From assembly GCA_038087875.1 (NCBI GenBank), contig JAXLNO010005735.1, positions 1-64,000 of the forward strand: a stretch of 64,000 nucleotides of DNA, given 5' to 3'. The position numbers were made by a program, and so were the translations under genes. The notes beneath the pieces were generated by a model. That model did not search any database, was not told the origin of the DNA, and saw only the letters and a list, made by a program, of their open reading frames with translations. Each line of letters starts with the position of its first letter. The stretch's first letter is position 1. Source of the stretch: Malacoraja senta (taxonomy: Eukaryota). Shown one piece after another: positions 5,466 to 54,700 of the stretch.

Positions 5466-7796
5466 TGAAGTCAGAATCAATAGTGTAGAAGTGCGAGTGC
5501 TGAAGTGGGAATGGTGAAGAACTTCAAATTCCTCGGCATGAACAACCTGTTGCATTTTAGTCACTGGGGCAGAACTTTGAAAATAATGAACGTTTAACAA
5601 TCCATCTGCAGCACTGATTAGAAACATAGAAAGCAGGTGCAGGAGTAGGTCATTAGGCCCTTCAAGCCAGCACCGTCATTCAATATGATCATGGCTGAGC
5701 ATCCAGAATCAGTACCCTGTTCCTGCTTTCTCCCCATATCCCTTGATTCTGTAGCACTAAGATCTAACTCTCCCTTGAATACATCCAGTGAATTGCCTCC
5801 ACTGCCTTCTGTGGCAGAGAATTCCACAGATTCACAACTTTCTGGGAGAAAATGTTTTTCCTCATCTCAGTCCTAAATGGCCTACCCTTTATTCGTAAAC
5901 TGTGACCCCTGGTTCTGGACTCCCCCAATATCGGGAAATTTTTTCCTGCATCTAACTGTCCAATCCCTAAGGAATTTTATGTCCCTAAGGAATTAATAAG
6001 AGCCCATGTCATCCTAAATTCCAATGAATATAAGCCCAGTCAGTCCATTCTTTCATCACATGTTTGTCCTGCCATACCGGGACAATAAATATTTTACTTT
6101 TTTATGAACAATATCCTTGATTTTATTGCTTTAAAAAAAAAATTCTGTTCCAGTCCCACCACTAAGATTTTTGCTGTATAATTGTTTGGGTCCTTTCCGC
6201 CTTCAATCAATTGAAAGCCAGAGTGGTAAAGAAGCCACTATTCATAGCATTGAGTATAAGAGTCAGGAAGTCATATGCTGCTTTATGGAACTTCAAAGAT
6301 AGACACAAAATGCTGGAGTAACTCAGCGGGACAGGCAGCATCTCTGGATAGAAGGAATGGGTGACATTTCTGGTTGAGTCCCTTCAGGCTGAAGAGGAAA
6401 GGGAGACATGGAGATAAGGAAGTGTAAGGTATGAAAGAATGACATCAAAGGAGATGTAGTTCAAGGAAAATGTAGAATAGATCATTGTTAGCTAGGAGAG
6501 GGTGTGAACGAAGCAGACAGATAATTTTTAATCAGGGGGGCAGTCAGACTGGTCGGAGAATAGAACTTCAGATAGGCGACTTTTAGAATATTATCGGCAT
6601 TTCTAGTTGCCCCAATGCAGGATGAATTTGGAAGCATGGAATTAGTGCAGAGGTGGTTTGCCAGAATGATGCACAGATTAGATATTAGCTAGAAGGAGAG
6701 GTTGGACAGACTTAGATTGTAATCGCTAGAATGCTGGAGGTTGATAAAAGTATATAAAACTATGAGAGGCATAGATGGGATAGAGAGTCAGAAACTTTTC
6801 CACAGGGTGGAAAGTAATGGAGAGCATAGTTTTCAGGTGAGTGGGACATGGTGTAAAGGGCCATGTATTAATAGAAGGCTCAATGAGAGATTTCTGCACT
6901 GATGTTGAGACTGTGCTGCACGTTTACACCTAGACACAACTTTAAACTGAGCTCATGTCTCTCCTCCCAGCTGAAAAAAAAGACGCATGGTATTACCTCA
7001 AATAAGGGCTGGGAAATTATTACACATGCATTGTCCAATTTTTATTACTTAAGCAATAACAGTAAAGTGGACTAAAGACAGACACAAAAATGTTAGATGG
7101 AGCTCTAGGGGCTGGTGGAATCAAGGGATATGGGGAGAAGGCAGGCATTCATTGGGGACGATCAGCCATGATCACCATGAATGGCGGTGCTGGCTCCAAG
7201 GGCTGAATGGCCTCCTCCTGCACCTATTTTCTATGCTTCTAAAAAGATGGAGTAACTCAGCAGGTCAGGCAGCACTTCTGGGAAAAAGGAAAAGGTGACG
7301 ATTTGTGTCGAGACCCTTCCCGAAATGTCACCTACTCCTTTCCCCCAGAAATGCTGCCTGACCAGCTGAGTTACTCCAGCTTTTTGCATCTGCCTACAGT
7401 AAAACAAGCATCTGCAGTTCCTTCCTACACAGTAAAGTAGACTATCTGGTTTATCTAAAACTGCAGTTTGTGGAATTGACTGCATTCTGAATTGTAAAAT
7501 AGTTATACTTTGAGAAACATCTATTCGGTTGTAAGATGCTATGTGAAATATGATTTTGTAATTGTTGTCCTTAAAACACCAATATAATCCCTACCATAAA
7601 ACCTGATCCTTAAACTGTATTCACTGGTAATTAGTGACCAGAACAAGTGGTCTCATTCCCATTGTTATCAGGTTTGTGTACACATGGACCAATAATTAGC
7701 TTCACAGCAGAGTTCTGTTAAAAAAGTACAAGAGATTAAGTTACTGTTGCTGCATTTACTCTCCTGGTTAAATAGTGCTGTGGGCGGCTGTTAAAC

Positions 7797-7848
7797 ATGC
7801 TTCTTTTTACCTTACTCAACACTTACGGTGTGGCCACTGTCTCCTCTG
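7797..7848 (+). CDS. MHC class I exon 1: signal peptide MLLFTLLNTYGVATVSS
   Basis: ATG at 7797, 17 codons plus G, then donor GTAAGC. Phase 1 joins alpha1 as G+AT=Asp. CCAAT at about 7689 and GGGCGG at about 7782 lie upstream. Confidence 0.75.
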
Positions 7849-8183: not shown

Positions 8184-8884
8184 ATTCCTTTTATCCAGAG
8201 ATGCTGCCTGACCTGCTGAGTTACTCCAGCATTTTGTCTACCTTCGCCCACAATGTCTGTGCCGAACAAAATAAACTAATCTCCTCTACCTGTATGTGAT
8301 CTGTATCCGGCCATTCCCTGCCTATCTATGTACCTATCTAAAAGCCTCTGAAATGTAACTGTTATATCTGCCACCACCATCACCACCACTGGCAGCGCAG
8401 TACAGGTGTCCACCACCCTCCACATAAAACAACTTGCTCCGCTCATCTCCTTTGAACATTGCTTCTCCAACCTTAAAGTGATGTTCTCTGGTCTTCAACA
8501 TTTCCACCCTGGGAAAAAGGTTCTGGCTGTCCACTCTGTCTGTGCCTCTCACCATGTTATGCACTTTCATCAGGTCTCCCTTCAACCTCCAGTATACAAG
8601 AGAAAACAATCCATGTTTGTCCAATCTGTTCTTGCACTAATACCTCAGACAGAATTCAGGTAAACCGGTGATGTGCACTTTCAATAAAGAAGTGACTTCT
8701 GCATTAGTAGGTGTTCCACCTCTCCAAGATTTCCTCAGCTGGTGTTAGACACCCACATGATGGTAAAATTCAGCCTGCATCAAATGACAAATCAATGTTG
8801 TGTTAATGTTGTTGCCATCTTGTTGTTTGTTGCATGCTTCCTGTACTGCAGACCCTATCCATTACATCACCACCACTTCCATAT

Positions 8885-11755
8885 AACGATATAATCATAT
8901 AACCATTACAGCACGGAAACAGGCCATCTCGGCCCTTCAAGTCCGTGCCGAACACTTTTTTTTTCCTTCCCCCTTCTTTCTTCTTACTTCCCCCTAGTCC
9001 CATCTACCTGCACCCAGACCATATCCTTCCATTCCTTTCCCGTCCATATACCCATCCAATCTATTTTTAAAGGATAAAATCGAACCTGCCTCCACCACTT
9101 CCACTGGAAGCTCATTCCACACAGCTACCACTCTCTGAGTAAAGAAGTTCCCCCTAATGTTCCCCCTAAACTTCTGTCCCTTAATTCTCAAGTCATGTCC
9201 CCTTGTTTGAATCTTCCCTACTCTCAATGGGAAAAGCTTATCCACGTCAACTCTGTCTAACCCGCTCATAATTTTAAAGACCTCTATCAAGTCCCCTCTT
9301 AACCTTCTGCACTCCAAAGAATAAAGCCCTAACTTGTTCAACCTTTCTCTGTAACTTAGTTGCTGAAACCCAGGCAACATTCTAGTAAATCTCCTCTGTA
9401 CTCTCTCTATTTTGTTGACATCCTTCCTATAATTAGGCGACCAAAATAGTACACCATACTCCAGAATTGGCCTCACCAATGCCTTGTACAATTTTAACAT
9501 TACATCCCAACTTCTATATTCAATGCTCTGATTTATAAAGGCCAGCACACCAAAAGCTTTCTTTACCACACTATCTACATGAGATTCCACCTTCAGGGAA
9601 CTATGCACAGTTATTCCTAGATCCCTCTGTTCAACTGCATTCCTCAATTCGCTACCATTTACCATGTACGTCCTATTTTGATTTGTCCTGCCGAGATGTA
9701 GCACCTCACATTTATCAGCATTAAACTCCATCTGCCATCTTTCAGCCCACTCTTCCAAATGGCCTAAATCTCTCTGTAGACTTTGAAAATCTACTTCATT
9801 ATCCACAACACCACCTATCTTAGTATCATCTGCATACTTACTAAATCCAATTTTCCACACCATCATCCAGATCATTGATGTACATGACAAACAACAGTGG
9901 ACCCAACACAGACCCCTGAGGCACCCCACTGGTCACCGGCCTCCAACCTGACAAACAGCCATCCACCATTACTCTCTGGCATCTCCCATTCAGCCACTGT
10001 TGAATCCATCTTGCTACTCCACCATTAATACCGAACAATTGAATCTTCTTAACCAACCTTCCATGAGGAACCTTGTCAAAGGCCTTACTGAAGTCCATAT
10101 AGACAACATCCACTGCTTTACCCTCATCAATTTCGCTAGTAACCTCTTCGCAAAATTCAAGAAGATTAGTCAAACATGACCTTCCAGGCACAAATCCATG
10201 TTGACTGTTCCTAATCAGACCCTGCTTATCCAGATGCTTATATATATTATCTCTAAGTATCCTTTCCATTAATTTGCCCACCACTGACGTCAAACTAACA
10301 GGTCTATAATTGCTTTGTTTACTCTCACAACCCTTTTTAAACAACGGAACAACATGCGCAGTACGCCAATCCTCCGGCACTATTCCTGTAACAATGACAT
10401 TTGAAATATTTTTGTCATAGCCCCTGCTATTTCTACACTAACTTCCCTCACTGTCCTAGAAAATATCCTGTCAGGACCTGGAGACTTATCCATTTTCATA
10501 TTTTTCAAAAGTGTCCGCACCTCCTCTTATTTGAATCTCATAGTTTCCATTGCTACTCTGCTTGTTTCCCTTACCTCACATAATTCCATATCCTTCTCCT
10601 TGGTGAATACCGAAGAAAAAAAATTGTTCAATATCTCCCCCATCTCTTTTGGCTCTGCAGATAGCTGTCCACTCTGACTCTCTAATGGACCAATTTTATT
10701 CCTTGTTATCCTTTTTCTATTAATATAGCTGTAGAAACCCTTTGGATTTACTTTCACCTTACTTGCAAAAGCAACCTCATATCTTCTTTTAGCTTTTCTA
10801 ATTTATTTCTTAATATTCTTTTTACATTCTTTATACTCCTCAAGCACCTCATTTACTCCATGCTGGCAATAATTATTGTAGATCTCTCTCTTTTTCCGAA
10901 CCAAGTGTCCAATTTCCCTTGAAAACCATGGCTCTTTCCAATTTTTACTATTTCCTTTCAACCGAACAGGGACATAAAGATTCTGTACTCTTAAAATGTC
11001 ACCTTTAAATGTCCTCCATTTCTCTACTACATCCTTCCCATAAAACAACATGTCCCAATTCACTCCTTTTAAATCCTTTCGCATCTCCTCAAAGTTAGAC
11101 TTTCTCCAATCAAAAATTTTAACCCTAGGTCCAGTTCTGATCCTCTCCATAATTATATTGAAACTAATGGTATTGTGATCACTGGACCCGAAGTGCTCCC
11201 CAACGCCCACCTCCGCCACCTGCCCTGTCTCATTTCCTAACAGGAGGTCCAGCACTGCCCCTTCTTTAGTAGGTACCTCTATGTATTGCTGCAAAAAACT
11301 ATCCTGCGCACATTTTACAAATTCCAAACCATCCAGCCCTTTTACAGTATGTGTTTCCCAGTCTAAGTGTGGAAAATTGAAATCTCCCACAATCACTACC
11401 TTGTGCTTACTACTAATATCTGCTATCTCCTTACATATTTGCTCTTCCAATTCTTGCTCCCCATTAGGCAGTCTATAATACACCCCTATATGTGTTGCTA
11501 CACCTTTCCCATTTCTCAGTTCCACCCAAATAGCCTCCCTAGACGAGCCCTCTACTCTATCCTGCCAAAGCACTGCTGTAATATCTTCCTTGACAAGCAA
11601 TGCAACACCCCCACCTCTTGACCCTCCAATTCTATCACACCAGAAGCAACGAAATCCTGGAATATTTAGTTTCCAATCACAGCCCTCCTGCAACCATGTG
11701 TCACTGATCGCCACAACAACATACTTCCAGGTGTCAATCCAGGCTCTATCCACGA
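8885..11755 (-). mobile_element. Near-complete CR1 ORF2 (AP endonuclease plus RT) with 3' UTR, few frameshifts
   Basis: ORFs 10803-11753 (APE: ISDTWL, VGDFNFP, LDLLL, SDHN), 10527-10757, 9841-10380 and 8994-9929 ([20 protein letters not shown]). Antisense in class I intron 1. Confidence 0.97.
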
Positions 11756-15967: not shown

Positions 15968-16228
15968 ATTTACACCATCTTGCATTTTACTACCTGTTGA
16001 ACCATGGATTGAATGAGCTGCCTGAGTACAGTATGGTAGCAATGCTGGATGACGTCCAGATAGCATATTTTGACAGCACACTAGAGCGGGCTGTTCCCAG
16101 ACAGCGATGGATGGCCCAGTCTTTCCCGCAGGATCACTGGGATTCAATGGCCATAACAGTTGCAGGTTTTCATGGGATTGTCAGAGGAAATGCTGAGATA
16201 GTCTACCAACAGCAACATGGTATCTCGA
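15968..16228 (+). CDS. MHC class I exon 2: alpha1 domain
   Basis: TTGCAG|...|GTAAGT, 261 nt. DLHHLAFYYLLNHGLNELPEYSMVAMLDDVQIAYFDSTLERAVPRQRWMAQSFPQDHWDSMAITVAGFHGIVRGNAEIVYQQQHGIS, with class I PE..., DD...YFDS and PRQRW motifs. Confidence 0.95.
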
Positions 16229-19013: not shown

Positions 19014-19295
19014 CCCAAGCTGTTTTCTTTGTGCAGGGTTTCTGCGGCTGTGAAGTGGACAGTGACAATTCCACTGATGGGTTTGTCAGACTGGGTTATG
19101 ATGGGGAGGATGCCTGTGCTTTTGACAAGGACAGAATGTTCTGGATTGCACTACGTCCAGATTTCCAGATGCTAGCAGATCGGTGGAACGTCAACACCTT
19201 CATGAACAAGTATTTTAAAGATCTCCTGGAGAAGGACTGTGTGAAGTGGCTGCGGATATATCTGGAGTGTGGACAAGAAGCACTACAGAGGAGAG
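19014..19295 (+). CDS. MHC class I exon 3: alpha2 domain
   Basis: CTCAG|...|GTACAC, 282 nt. TQAVFFVQGFCGCEVDSDNSTDGFVRLGYDGEDACAFDKDRMFWIALRPDFQMLADRWNVNTFMNKYFKDLLEKDCVKWLRIYLECGQEALQRR, with the conserved C101/C164 pair, YDG.D, W147 and WL..YL. Confidence 0.95.
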
Positions 19296-20501: not shown

Positions 20502-20777
20502 AAACCTCTGAGGTGTTTATTGGGATTAAAAGTGATGGGTCGCAATCACTGAGACTCTCCTGCCTTGTCACAGGCTTCTAGCCACGGGCCATCGATGTAA
20601 CGTGGCTGAGAGATGGTGAGGGGGTCCACAAGTCTGAATCCAGTGATGATCTGTTGCCCAATTGGGATGGGACTTACCAGCTGAAGAATACAATTCAACT
20701 GAGTAGAGAAGATGTGGCAAAATTCTCCTGTTACATCGAACATGCAACTCTGCTGCAGGGAGTCAATGTTCCACAGG
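20502..20777 (+). CDS. MHC class I exon 4: alpha3 C1-set Ig domain with an in-frame TAG at 20579-20581
   Basis: TTGCAG|...|GTAAGT, 276 nt. ETSEVFIGIKSDGSQSLRLSCLVTGF*PRAIDVTWLRDG..LLPNWDGTYQLKNTIQL..KFSCYIEHATL. Confidence 0.95.
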
Positions 20778-23798: not shown

Positions 23799-24028
23799 AG
23801 ATGGCAGCGAAAGAAGATATAAAGATTAGGATCGTGACTGGAGCTGTAATTGTTCCTCTTATTCTCCTGGGGATCATCCTTGGAATTGGTTGCTGGAAGA
23901 AGAGGAAAAAGATGAAACCTTTCAATGAACAGGGACCAGCTGACAACAGCAGAGACCAGCAGCGGACTGCAGTGACCATGAAGCACAATCAGCTTCCGTT
24001 GGGATACAGAGGAGGTCTACCGGAATGA
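23799..24028 (+). CDS. MHC class I exon 5: connecting peptide, transmembrane helix and cytoplasmic tail
   Basis: CAACAG| phase 1. EMAAKEDIKIR-IVTGAVIVPLILLGIILGIGCW-KKRKK (stop-transfer)...LGYRGGLPE*. No strong internal donor seen. Confidence 0.85.
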
Positions 24029-44711: not shown

Positions 44712-45752
44712 ACATGTTTAAGAAAGAACTGCAGATGCTGGAAAAATCCAAGGTGGACAAAAATGCTGGAGAAACTCAGCGGTGAGGCAGCATCTATGGA
44801 GCAAAGGAATAGGTGACGTTTTGGGTCGAGACCCTTCTTCAGACTGATATGGGGGTGGGGGGCGGGAAGAAGAAAGGAAGAGGTGGAGATAGTAGGCTGT
44901 GGGAGAGCTTCGAAGGGAAGGGGAAGGAGGGAGAAAGCAAAGACTACCTGAAAATGGAGGTCAATGTTCATACCGCTGGGGTGTAAACTACCCAAGCGAA
45001 AAATGATATTCTGCCCCTCCAATTTGCGGAGGGTCTTACTCTGGCGTGGAGGAGACCCAGGACAGAAAGGTCCGATTCTGAATGGGAGGGGGAGTTGAAG
45101 TGTTGAGCCACTGGGAGATCAGGTTGGTTAATGTGGACTGAGCGGAGGTGTTGGGTGAAGCGATCGCCAAGCCTGCGCTTGGTCTCACCGATGTAAAGCA
45201 GTTGACACCTAGAGCAGCGGATGCAATAGATGAGGTTGGAGGAGGGGCAGGTGAACCTCTGCCTCACTTGGAAAGACTGCTTAGGCCCTTGGATGGAGTC
45301 ATGGGGGGAGATAAAGCGACAAGTGTAGCATTTCCTGCGGTTGCAAGGGAAAGTGCCAGGGGAGGGGAAGGTTAGGGAACGGGGCTTCTTCTCTTCGACT
45401 ATAGATGAGGCTCTCACCAAGGTCTCTTCTATATCTCGTTGCTCCGCTCTCACTCCCCATTCCCCCCACTCGTGACAAGTCCCCCTTGTCCTCACCTTCC
45501 ACCCTACCAGCCGTCACATACAACAGATAATCCTCCGACATATTCGCCACCTCCAACGGGATCCCATCACTGGCCACATCTTCTCATCTTCTCCCCTTTC
45601 AGCTTTCTGCAGAGACTGCACCCTCTGTAACTCCCTGGTCAATGTGTCCCTTCCCACCCAAACCACTCCCTCCCCTGGTACTTTCCCTTGCCACCGCAGG
45701 AAATGCTACACTTGTCGCTTTACCTCCCCCCTTGACTCCATCCAAGGACCTA
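44712..45752. mobile_element. Penelope-like element: GIY-YIG endonuclease and terminal repeat on the minus strand (44712-45385) with an inverted ORF fragment on the plus strand (45430-45752)
   Basis: ORF 44968-45495: FPCNRRKCYTC..NLIYCIRC..LLYIGETKRRLGDRFTQH. The plus segment repeats PSPGTFPCHRRKCYTC..DSIQGP. Confidence 0.93.
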
Positions 45753-50860: not shown

Positions 50861-53800
50861 CAAGATGGCGCCTGCCTGCGGCGACTTTTGCGGAGCACCA
50901 GAACAGAAAAGGTTCACCTACAACTTCTATCAACTTACCTGCATCAGGGAAACGGCAGTAATCGGTGCCGTTTCAGACAAGCTGCTTGGGCAGCTGAATG
51001 TGCTGGCAATTTCGCGATCTCCCACAGCTGCGGGAGCCCCGGACTTTAAATTTTCCCACGCTGGCTGTGGAACTCCCGACCCGACTGAGGATCCCAGGTA
51101 CTGTACCTGGGAACCCCGGGATCACCTCCAGAGCCCACAGGCCGGATCTCCCAGGAACAATGAAGCTGGAGCTGCCGACTTTGAATGTACCCCCATTCGT
51201 TACGGAGCTGGAGCTGCCGTCTGTGAAGGAATCCCCGTCCCAGCGCAGGTCCGCAGAATCAGCAGGTACAGTGGACTCAGCACCTGGAAACAAAGGGGAA
51301 GCCTCCATTGTGTCCGGAAACGTGGCCGACGGGCAGGACTTCAGGTCAGACTGAAGCGCAGGGGACTTCGGCCCCCTCTCCCTACTATCCTACTGGCCAA
51401 CGTATAAAGTGGAGGACTTAAGGCAAGACTGCTTTATCAAAGTGAGCTGAGGGAATGACTGTGTTCTGTTTCACAGAGACATGGCTCACCCCCAGCTCCC
51501 CAGATTCAGCGGTCCAGCCTGAAGGGTTCTCCATCCATCGTATGGACCGTACACTGGCATCTGGGAAAGGGAGAGGAGGGGGCGTCTGCCTCATGGTCAA
51601 CTCTGCGTGGTGCTCAGACGTGGCAGTCCTGTCCAACTCCTGCTCTCCACACCTCGAACATCTGGCAGTGAAGTGTCGTCCCTTCTACCTTCCGAGGGAA
51701 TTCACCTCCATCATCATGACCGCGGTCTACATCCCACCCCAGGCAGACCTCCGTCTGGCACTGGGGGAGCTGCACGCCGTGGTAAACAAACACCAGACGT
51801 CTTACCCCGAGGCGTTTACCACCATAGCCGGGGACTTCAATAAGGCAAACCTAAAGAAATCACTCCCTAACTTCCACCAACATTTCTCCTGCTGCACCAG
51901 AGGATCAAACACCCTCGACCACTGCTACACAACCATCAAGAATGCCTATCGTTCTATCCCTCGCCCTCACTTCGGTAAATCTGACCATACCGCGGTGCTG
52001 CTGCTTCCTGCCTACAGGCAGCAATTAAAGAGCGCACCACTAGAGGTGTTACACTGTACAGAGCTGGTCGAGGGGGGCAGAGGAACAACTCCAGGACAGT
52101 TTGGAGTCTGTAGACTGGGCAATGTTCAAGGACTCGGCAACGGACCTGAACGAATACGCCACAGTCGTTACAGACTTCATTAAGAAGTGTGTGGACTGCA
52201 TCCCCACCAAAACCTTCCGAGCGTTTCCCAATCAGAAACCTTGGATGAACTTTGAGATCCGCACTCTTCTGAAGTCCAGACACCGGGCATTCATGTCTGA
52301 TGATACAGTGGCCTACAAGGAGTCCAGATACGACCTTGGTAAGGCCATCAAAAAGGCCAAAAGGGACTTCTGCTCCAAACTGGAGGAAGAGACTGATGTT
52401 CGCCGGCTGTGGCAGGGCCTGAATGCAATCACCTCTTACAAGGCGAAATCAGGAGGCAGCTCGAATGTCGGCGAAACATCACTCCCTGATGAGCTCAATG
52501 CGTTTTACGCACGCTTTGATAGGGAGAACACCGATGTGCCTTGCCGAGCCCCCATTCGCTGTGATGGTATTTCAGTCTCAGTCACAGAGGCCGACGTCAG
52601 GAAATCCTTCAGAGGGGTGAACCCTCGAAAAGCGCCTGGACCTGATGGTATACCTGGTCGCGTTCTAAAAACCTGTGCGGACCAACTGGCTGGAGTTTTT
52701 ACAGACATTTTCAACCTCTCACTTCTGAGGTCTGAGGTCCCCACCTGCTTCAAAAGGGCATCAATTATACCAGTGCCCAAGAAGAGTAAGGTAACGTGCC
52801 TCAATGACTATCGACCTGTGGCACTAACGCCTGTGGTGATGAAGTGCTTTGAGAGGTTGATCATGACGCAGATCAACTCCTACCTCGACAAAAACCTGGA
52901 CCCACTGCAGCTCGCTTACCGCCACAACAGATCAACGGTGGATGTGATCTCGCTGGCCCTCCACTCCGCTCTGGACCACTTGGACAACAAAAACTCATAT
53001 GTCAGGCTGTTATTCATCGATTACAGCTCGGCATTTAACACAATCATCCCCTCCAAGCTGGTTACCAAACTCGCAGAACTGGGTCTCTGCGCATCCCTCT
53101 GCAATTGGATCCTTGACTTCCTCACTCTCAGACCACAGTCTGTTCGTATTGGTGGAAATGTGTCAGACTCGATAACAATTAGCACGGGAGCACCTCAAGG
53201 CTGCGTGCTCAGTCCCCTGCTGTACTCACTCTATACTCATGACTGCGTAGCCGGACATAGTGCGAACTCCATCATCAAGTTCGCTGATGACACCACTGTT
53301 GTGGGACGTAGCACTGATGGGGATGAGTCAGAGTATAGAAGAGAGATCGAGCAACTGTCCATATGGTGCCAGCACAATAACCTGGCCCTCAACACCAGCA
53401 AAACCAAGGAACTGATTGTGGACTTTGGAAGGAGTAGGATGGGGACCCACAGTCCCGTTTATATCAACGGGTCGATGGTTGAAAGGGTCAAGAGCTTCAA
53501 ATTCCTGGGCGTGCACATCTCTGAAGATCTTTCCTGGTCCGAGAACAATGATGCCATTATTAAGAAAGCACATCAGCGCCTCTACTTCCTGAGAAGATTA
53601 CGGAGAGTCGGTTTGTCAAGGAGGACTCTCTCTAACTTCTACAGGTGCACAGTAGAGAGCATGCTGACCGGTTGCATCGTGGCTTGGTTCGGCAACTTGA
53701 GTGCCCTGGAGAGGAAAAGACTACAAAAAGTAGTAAACACTGCCCAGTCCATCATCGGCTCTGACCTCCCTTCCATCGAGGGGATCTACCACAGTCGCTG

Positions 53801-54141
53801 CCTCAAAAAGGCTGGCACCATCATCAAGGACCCACACCATCCTGGCCACACACTCATCTCCCTACTACCTTCAGGTAGAAGGTACAGGAGCCTGAAGACT
53901 GCAACGACCAGGTTCAGGAACAGCTACTTCCCCACAGCCATCAGGCTATTAAACCTGGCTCGGACATAACACTGAACTTTACTAGCCAATATGTTATTTG
54001 CACTTTATCAGTATATTGACCATTGTGTATATATTTATAGAATGCCTTGTAGTAAATGCCTACTATGTTCTGTTGTGCTCAAGCAAAGCAAGAATTTCAT
54101 TGTCCTACCAGGGACACATGACAATAAACTCACTTGACTTG
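50861..54141 (+). mobile_element. Near-full-length Rex1/Babar non-LTR retrotransposon (APE plus RT), about 2 frameshifts
   Basis: Starts CAAGATGGCG. ORFs 50865-51407, 51455-52183 (FTETWL, AGDFN, TLDHCY, SDH) and 52101-53969 (LLFIDYSSAFNTI, KFADDTT). Tail GACAATAAA..(CTTGA)n. AAC on both sides. Confidence 0.96.
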
Positions 54142-54477: not shown

Positions 54478-54551
54478 ATGATGAGATCCTGCTTTGATGT
54501 TGGTGAAGTTTGGCTCAGTTGCTGCTGTTGATGCGAGACGTTGTGCGTGAA

Positions 54552-54603
54552 ATGATTCTGTTCATCTTGTTGAGTTTCTTCCGCGTACAAGGGGCTCAAG
54601 CAG
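54552..54603 (+). CDS. Signal-peptide exon of a second, probably MHC-family gene: MILFILLSFFRVQGAQA
   Basis: ATG, 17 codons plus G, perfect donor CAG|GTAAGT. Same length, phase and M-x-LF-x-LL start as the leader at 7797. Confidence 0.65.
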
Positions 54604-54700
54604 GTAAGTTAATGACTCTCATTTTATTCGCTACTGGCTAAAAGCGTCTTGGCTTTATCTCAATCTTGACCGGAGGCGACTGAGTTTAAAAAAGCGCGCA

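Follow-up and report, generated by a model that had tools for sequence, protein, structure and literature searches.

The window, i.e. the whole stretch of 64,000 nucleotides analysed, carries on its + strand a five-exon nonclassical MHC class I gene in which every intron is in phase 1 and each domain has one exon. The leader exon (7797-7848), which encodes MLLFTLLNTYGVATVSS plus one further base and ends at the donor gtaagc, is followed by the alpha1 exon (15968-16228, phase 1-1, donor gtaagt), the alpha2 exon (19014-19295, phase 1-1), the alpha3 (C1-set) exon (20502-20777, 276 nt, phase 1-1), which is open apart from one TAG, and the last exon (23799-24028), which comprises the connecting peptide, the transmembrane (TM) segment and the cytoplasmic tail and closes with a TGA at 24026-24028. 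As alpha1 donor and alpha2 acceptor we chose the sites used in the NCBI model of the little-skate protein P0001. The joined coding sequence measures 1101 nt and contains a single internal stop. The earlier note had described the leader, alpha1, alpha2 and TM/tail exons as open and had placed an in-frame TAG at the Tyr of the GFYP motif (20579-20581) in an alpha3 exon of 276 nt and phase 1-1, all of which was confirmed; the acceptor of this exon is ...cttgcag| and its donor AGG|gtaagt. Pfam PF00129 matches alpha2 with 60.9 bits (cut-off 28.3) and alpha1 by itself with 25.2 bits (E 1.4e-5), and the PDB matches of the alpha1/alpha2 platform range from MR1 to classical class I. The part of alpha3 that follows the stop is recognized as C1-set by Pfam (E 2.2e-8) and also matches class I-like chains in the PDB.

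The proximal promoter (7433-7796, + strand), as defined by comparison with sawfish, is conserved and contains a CCAAT box at 7689-7693. A region of 478 nt upstream, including the leader exon, is 78% identical to sawfish, with an exon dS of about 0.5 between skate and sawfish, and this conservation suggests that the gene is probably still transcribed. At 7664/7665, 7 bp are absent as compared to sawfish, which removes an inverted CCAAT (ATTGG) from the otherwise conserved promoter. The leader peptide is the same in the little-skate locus L001, and 16 of its 17 residues recur in the sawfish leader, which we located at 4581-4632 of L003; in the sawfish model P0151, residues 1-72 are taken from an upstream exon of doubtful status.

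When alpha2 was used in an exhaustive HMMER search, one close protein emerged, P0001 from Leucoraja erinacea (little skate), which is 95% identical in alpha2. A search with P0001 led to a second skate model, P0021, and to eleven other species (sawfish, manta, stingray and eight sharks), with two proteins in Pristiophorus and one in each of the others, and NCBI annotates this lineage as 'MHC class I-related gene protein-like' (MR1-like). The set used here consists of P0151 (Pristis), P0152 (Mobula), P0154 (Hypanus), the shark proteins P0153 and P0155-P0161, and P0001. P0001 shares 53-72% identity with the 12 proteins of the lineage and 28-39% with other class I proteins, and the window copy is 77% (alpha1) and 85% (alpha2) identical to sawfish. 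The gene thus belongs to a conserved nonclassical class I lineage of sharks and rays, clearly separate from other class I proteins. It shares with the other members the five exons, a near-identical leader, the batoid VPQ end of alpha3 and the gene order, i.e. the position upstream of a 9ch4-like gene, but differs from them by a stop at an invariant Tyr, by a P>S exchange and by an extra Asp codon.

The neighbouring 9ch4-like gene is a second class I-like gene, which follows in the same orientation some 30 kb further downstream. Its leader exon (54531-54635, +) is MREAVREMILFILLSFFHVQGALAG-like (71% identity), and its alpha1 exon lies past the end of the window. The same order, MR1-like gene followed by 9ch4-like gene, is found on L. 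erinacea contig 384, and the window is collinear from 44 to 63 kb with the thorny-skate and little-skate DNA around the 9ch4-like gene at 87-92% identity. PDB entry 9ch4 chain A ('Ig-like domain-containing protein') is also the closest solved structure to the gene under study (E 2.9e-60 with the intact little-skate relative). Both have the class I fold over alpha1-alpha3, and the 9ch4-like gene adjoins that of the window lineage, but 9ch4 represents a separate lineage of about 35-45% identity, with P0042, P0230 and P0232 as skate members. A review from 2025 mentions, as personal communication, that sharks and rays have CD1-like UFA and UGA genes which bind lipid (PMC12562908); the 9ch4 lineage would correspond to these CD1-like UFA/UGA genes, the identity of 9ch4 with UGA being putative. 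In the literature searched, neither papers citing PDB entry 9ch4 nor work on skate class I were found.

In little skate the MR1-like lineage occupies at least two loci. L001 has all five exons, intact splice sites and an open frame of 365 aa, its leader lying 9.9 kb upstream and being missing from the partial NCBI model. That model, P0001 (L001:100-22150; 'partial', 359 aa), lacks the leader and contains 12 residues of intron read-through after alpha2. L002 (11717-14243) consists of alpha2 and alpha3 only, with no alpha1 or TM exon within reach; its alpha2 exon has a TGA at a conserved Cys and a GC donor, and the donor of its alpha3 exon is deleted. P0021 (263 aa) is the NCBI protein modelled on this decayed locus. 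The database models may thus be corrected, as the locus of P0001 is intact and that of P0021 a wreck, and the coexistence of an intact L001 and a decayed L002 shows birth-and-death turnover in the family. In our searches every other species had one locus, except for Pristiophorus with its two proteins, and the window copy is the third skate copy of the lineage. A lineage that was found as one locus in almost every other shark or ray searched has thus been multiplied in skates, where some of the copies decayed.

We considered whether the window might represent an allele or haplotig of L001 or L002, and rejected this. In noncoding DNA, the divergence between the window and L001 is 8.6% (11,963 nt compared, 91 indel events), and that between the window and L002 is about 10%. 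Beside these genes, the syntenic DNA of little skate and thorny skate shows 95-96.5% identity. This argues against the window copy being an allele of L001, as the overall noncoding divergence of 8-11.5% is about twice the Leucoraja-Amblyraja distance. By this measure the split between the window copy and L001 is about twice as old as that between the genera Leucoraja and Amblyraja. If the window came from a more distant skate, L001 would be its orthologue rather than a back-up copy.

The lesion itself is small. The alpha3 exon, read in phase 1, translates as TSEVFIGIKSDGSQSLRLSCLVTGF*PRAIDVTWLRDG...FSCYIEHATLLQGVNVPQ, i.e. 91 of the 92 codons are sense codons, and the domain retains its Cys pair (LSC...FSC) and the Trp (VTW) and is intact in its remaining parts as well, while being interrupted by one TAG (20579-20581). 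The affected Tyr of GFYP is invariant in the 13 relatives aligned. L001, L002 and sawfish all encode it by TAC, which a single C>G exchange turns into TAG. Two further peculiarities of the exon have no counterpart in the relatives. At its start, TCT (Ser, 20507-20509) replaces the Pro of the xPEV motif, which is invariant in the 12 relatives covering the position, and at 20645-20650 an in-frame duplication of 3 nt (GAT GAT) adds an Asp codon that no relative has. In addition, a window-specific Q>R exchange (CGG, 20585-20587) adjoins the stop. Altogether, the window copy has a single stop and a single additional codon, which keeps the frame, and it lacks frameshifts. The earlier note had also seen erosion at both ends of the domain. 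As to the start ('PP>TS'), the second change, P>S, is indeed unique to the window copy, but the first residue is variable in the lineage (T/I/A/S/N) and a PP was never ancestral. As to the end ('W>Q'), the idea has to be dropped: the intact skate relative, sawfish, manta and stingray all have VPQ or IPQ, VPW being confined to sharks, and the final Q is an old batoid trait rather than decay.

As one base decides, the TAG might have been introduced by assembly or consensus calling, which several similar family copies in the region can confuse, or it might be a rare allele with the gene being intact in the species. Yet the site lies outside any homopolymer, and the G is found in neither close relative, so that it was not borrowed from L001 or L002. 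Moreover, the change is a transversion beside a second window-specific change, and the two jointly create a perfect inverted repeat, which looks like a true mutational event. We thus regard an error or rare allele as improbable and take the TAG for a genuine nonsense mutation that struck, by a single hit, one member of a nonclassical class I family with several copies.

The inverted repeat just mentioned comprises AGCCACG (20580-20586) and CGTGGCT (20601-20607). Two window-specific changes lie five bases apart in its left arm: C>G at 20581 gives rise to the TAG, and A>G at 20586 to Q>R. Before these changes 5 of the 7 bases would have paired with the conserved T-W-L codons, which start 14 nt further downstream, and with both changes the 7-bp inverted repeat is perfect; it is absent from L001. 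In 20,000 simulations that put an equal number of random substitutions on the reconstructed ancestor, 2.9% produced a new perfect repeat for which two of the substitutions were required. This suggests, but does not prove, that Y>stop and Q>R stem from one templated (quasi-palindrome) mutation and, if so, they constitute a single event instead of two steps of decay. The window may thus provide an example of a templated double substitution that creates a nonsense codon.

What a transcript of this gene would yield depends on the fate of alpha3. The acceptor (...ttcttacacttgcag|AA) is good, with CTGAC-type branch-point candidates about 20 nt upstream, the donor AGG|gtaagt is strong, and both sites conform to the consensus and are the same as in the intact relative L001, in agreement with the earlier note, which had called them intact; the exon should therefore be included. 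The two products calculated in that note, 274 aa with alpha3 skipped and a truncated 224 aa with alpha3 included, are correct. Its expectation that the latter would probably be a target of nonsense-mediated decay (NMD) agrees with the usual rule, by which a premature stop is predicted to trigger NMD when over 50-55 nt separate it from the final exon junction; here the distance is 196 nt (20581 to 20777), and in the NCBI models P0001 and P0151 no coding exon follows that of the TM/tail. Two cryptic splice routes around the stop were rejected, since use of the YAG made by the TAG itself shifts the frame, and the conserved in-frame CAG|GC at 20571-20573 sits upstream of the TAG and thus retains it. 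In Chiloscyllium plagiosum, the protein P0161 ('isoform X2') has the end of alpha2 joined straight to GFYP at the protein level. For this, splicing would have to use an acceptor inside alpha3 (CAG|GC TTC TAC) that keeps the frame, and the initial 22-24 residues of the domain would be lost.

The 224-aa product, composed of leader, alpha1, alpha2 and 25 residues of alpha3, might in principle escape decay and be secreted as an anchor-less platform, its reading frame being open. Besides the distance of 196 nt, which predicts NMD, this is opposed by the stub, whose Cys would lack its partner and whose final Ig strand would be cut in half, and by our searches of the protein collection, where no such protein is on record; we deem it extremely unlikely. 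Alternatively, translational readthrough of the stop or A-to-I editing of UAG to UGG might restore a full-length protein. The UAG is situated in the 5' arm of a small hairpin, and U-A-G is a triplet preferred by ADAR. However, the stem is short (7-8 bp), shuffled sequence folds equally well (z = -1.31), the context TAG CCA CGG is not a known readthrough motif, and the result would be a Trp in place of an invariant Tyr. With its short stem, ordinary fold and lack of a readthrough context, this route was rejected, and the probability left for it is close to negligible.

The substitution pattern bears on the question of how long the stop has been present. Omega values were estimated per exon according to Nei-Gojobori. 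Between skate and sawfish omega is 0.25 for alpha1, 0.10 for alpha2, 0.16 for alpha1+alpha2, 0.40 for alpha3 and 0.6-0.7 for the TM exon, so that in the long term alpha3 and the tail are the least constrained parts of the lineage. Between the window and L001 the values are 0.38 for alpha1, 0.44 for alpha2, 0.41 for alpha1+alpha2, 1.38 for alpha3 and 0.65 for the TM exon. The alpha3 value results from 13 replacement and 3 silent differences in the pairwise comparison and departs from the long-term 0.40 with P = 0.03. Possibly, relaxation or diversification of alpha3 set in once the family had expanded. When the changes are polarised by sawfish and L002, the nonsynonymous:synonymous counts are 19:9 on the window branch and 16:7 on the L001 branch, a similarity that shows no apparent extra relaxation of the window copy as compared to the intact L001. 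The replacement excess in alpha3 is present on both branches, and as the intact L001 has it as well it is therefore not a consequence of the stop. In the per-exon dN/dS comparison suggested in the earlier note, alpha3 (1.38) does stand apart from alpha1+alpha2 (0.41), but the intact relative exhibits the same pattern.

Indels are more informative. In the noncoding DNA, 7.6 gap events per kb separate the window from L001, and 77% of them are not a multiple of three; had the whole branch been neutral, 3.2 frameshifts would be expected in the 1.1-kb coding sequence, where none is seen (P = 0.04). For stops, one was observed against 1.5-2 expected under neutrality. The lack of frameshifts argues that the copy was under selection for most of its history and that the stop is young relative to the duplication, and the substitution pattern, being the same as in the intact L001, likewise argues for a young stop.

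A different reading, raised in the earlier note, is that of an alpha1-alpha2-only class I protein. If 19295 were joined to 23799, alpha3 would be skipped and a functional 274-aa protein composed of leader, alpha1, alpha2 and TM would result, resembling EPCR or ULBP and possibly holding a lipid. EPCR and ULBP/RAET1 are encoded by genes without an alpha3 exon, and the proteins fold without beta2-microglobulin. The hypothetical skipped product would share with them the domain order, i.e. platform, short stalk and TM segment; the window gene, however, keeps a complete alpha3 exon, and no alpha3-less product of it is on record. The loss of the alpha3 exon, the hallmark of EPCR and ULBP/RAET1, was thus not observed here, the 276-nt exon being present with consensus splice sites.

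Several observations are in line with such an alpha1-alpha2-only protein. Skipping of alpha3 keeps the frame, omega against L001 is far lower in alpha1+alpha2 than in alpha3, and the only invariant positions struck by window-specific changes are in alpha3 (P>S and Y>stop), where two of three changes hit them as opposed to none in alpha1/alpha2, although these numbers are tiny. Furthermore, human HLA-G4 is an alpha1-alpha2 isoform that arises by skipping of alpha3 and whose receptor is unknown (PMC12583952). It demonstrates that skipping of a symmetric class I alpha3 exon preserves the frame and does occur (PMC12583952), but the gene behind this minor isoform is intact, and HLA-G4 offers no evidence for a nonsense allele turning into a working receptor. 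Symmetry of the exon is general among class I genes and thus lends no support to this reading. The difference between alpha1+alpha2 and alpha3 in the substitution counts is not significant (Fisher P = 0.28), although such rate tests have little power here, the alpha3 excess, shared with the intact L001, is not tied to the stop, and the splice sites of alpha3 are unchanged. Among 79 matches, in a range of lengths that would cover such a product, there was no alpha3-less protein from any species of the lineage, and the structure of 9ch4, the nearest relative for which one is available, includes alpha3. Taken together, the alpha1-alpha2-only interpretation finds no support in the retained exon, in the proteins on record or in the dN/dS pattern, and we judge it decidedly improbable. 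A related version, in which the stop is old, common to several skate copies and kept by means of alpha3 skipping, which would yield a membrane-bound alpha1-alpha2 platform with a conserved greasy groove, is about equally improbable. If it were true, an EPCR/ULBP-like architecture would have been caught arising from a beta2-microglobulin-type class I gene in cartilaginous fish; only RNA showing dominant skipping of alpha3 would give the locus a bearing on the origin of two-domain class I-like receptors.

The open alpha1, alpha2 and TM exons, together with the conserved promoter, are equally expected if an alpha3-less product is still in use, and the same is true of the alpha1/alpha2 changes that spare the invariant positions. 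Expression does not separate the readings either: a collection of 5.8 billion proteins, searched with the alpha1-alpha2 part, with the open frame of alpha3 and with the relative in full length, yielded for this lineage neither a product of 224 or 274 aa nor any other protein derived from transcripts. For the neighbouring 9ch4-like lineage the collection does contain members from run assemblies (Logan), and their lack for the gene's own lineage points to low expression.

We thus consider it most likely that the window copy is an ordinary young pseudogene or null allele, recently disabled by the single change of TAC to TAG. The earlier note, for all its interest in a two-domain protein, had itself leaned towards a simple recent null, and this is reinforced by the C>G at an invariant Tyr as the lone lesion, by the unchanged splice sites and by the little-skate relatives, one of which is intact and close and the other decayed. 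In such a scenario one base change at the invariant Tyr of GFYP, which perhaps arose jointly with the neighbouring Q>R by templated (quasi-palindrome) mutation, would recently have disabled the gene. Alpha3 would be spliced in as usual owing to the retained consensus signals, the mRNA with its premature stop would be subject to NMD, and at best a 224-aa fragment without an anchor would be translated, so that function would be lost. The find would then add another copy in decay to an MHC class Ib family that evolves by birth and death, as is known of such families.

Apart from the class I gene, the window consists mostly of transposable elements; in the rest of it no other host gene was found, only LINE and Penelope-type elements and the one leader exon of the 9ch4-like gene. 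A LINE lies antisense in intron 1 (8878-11750, - strand), with an endonuclease frame at 10803-11753 and a reverse-transcriptase remnant at 8994-9929. It is not present at the matching point of L001 and is 91-95% identical to copies in L004 and L005. A weak GIY-YIG match on the - strand (44968-45495; 22.0 bits, E 2e-4), which falls just below the Pfam cut-off of 22.6, possibly marks a Penelope-type element, and a reverse-transcriptase frame of 622 aa extends from 52101 to 53969 on the + strand.
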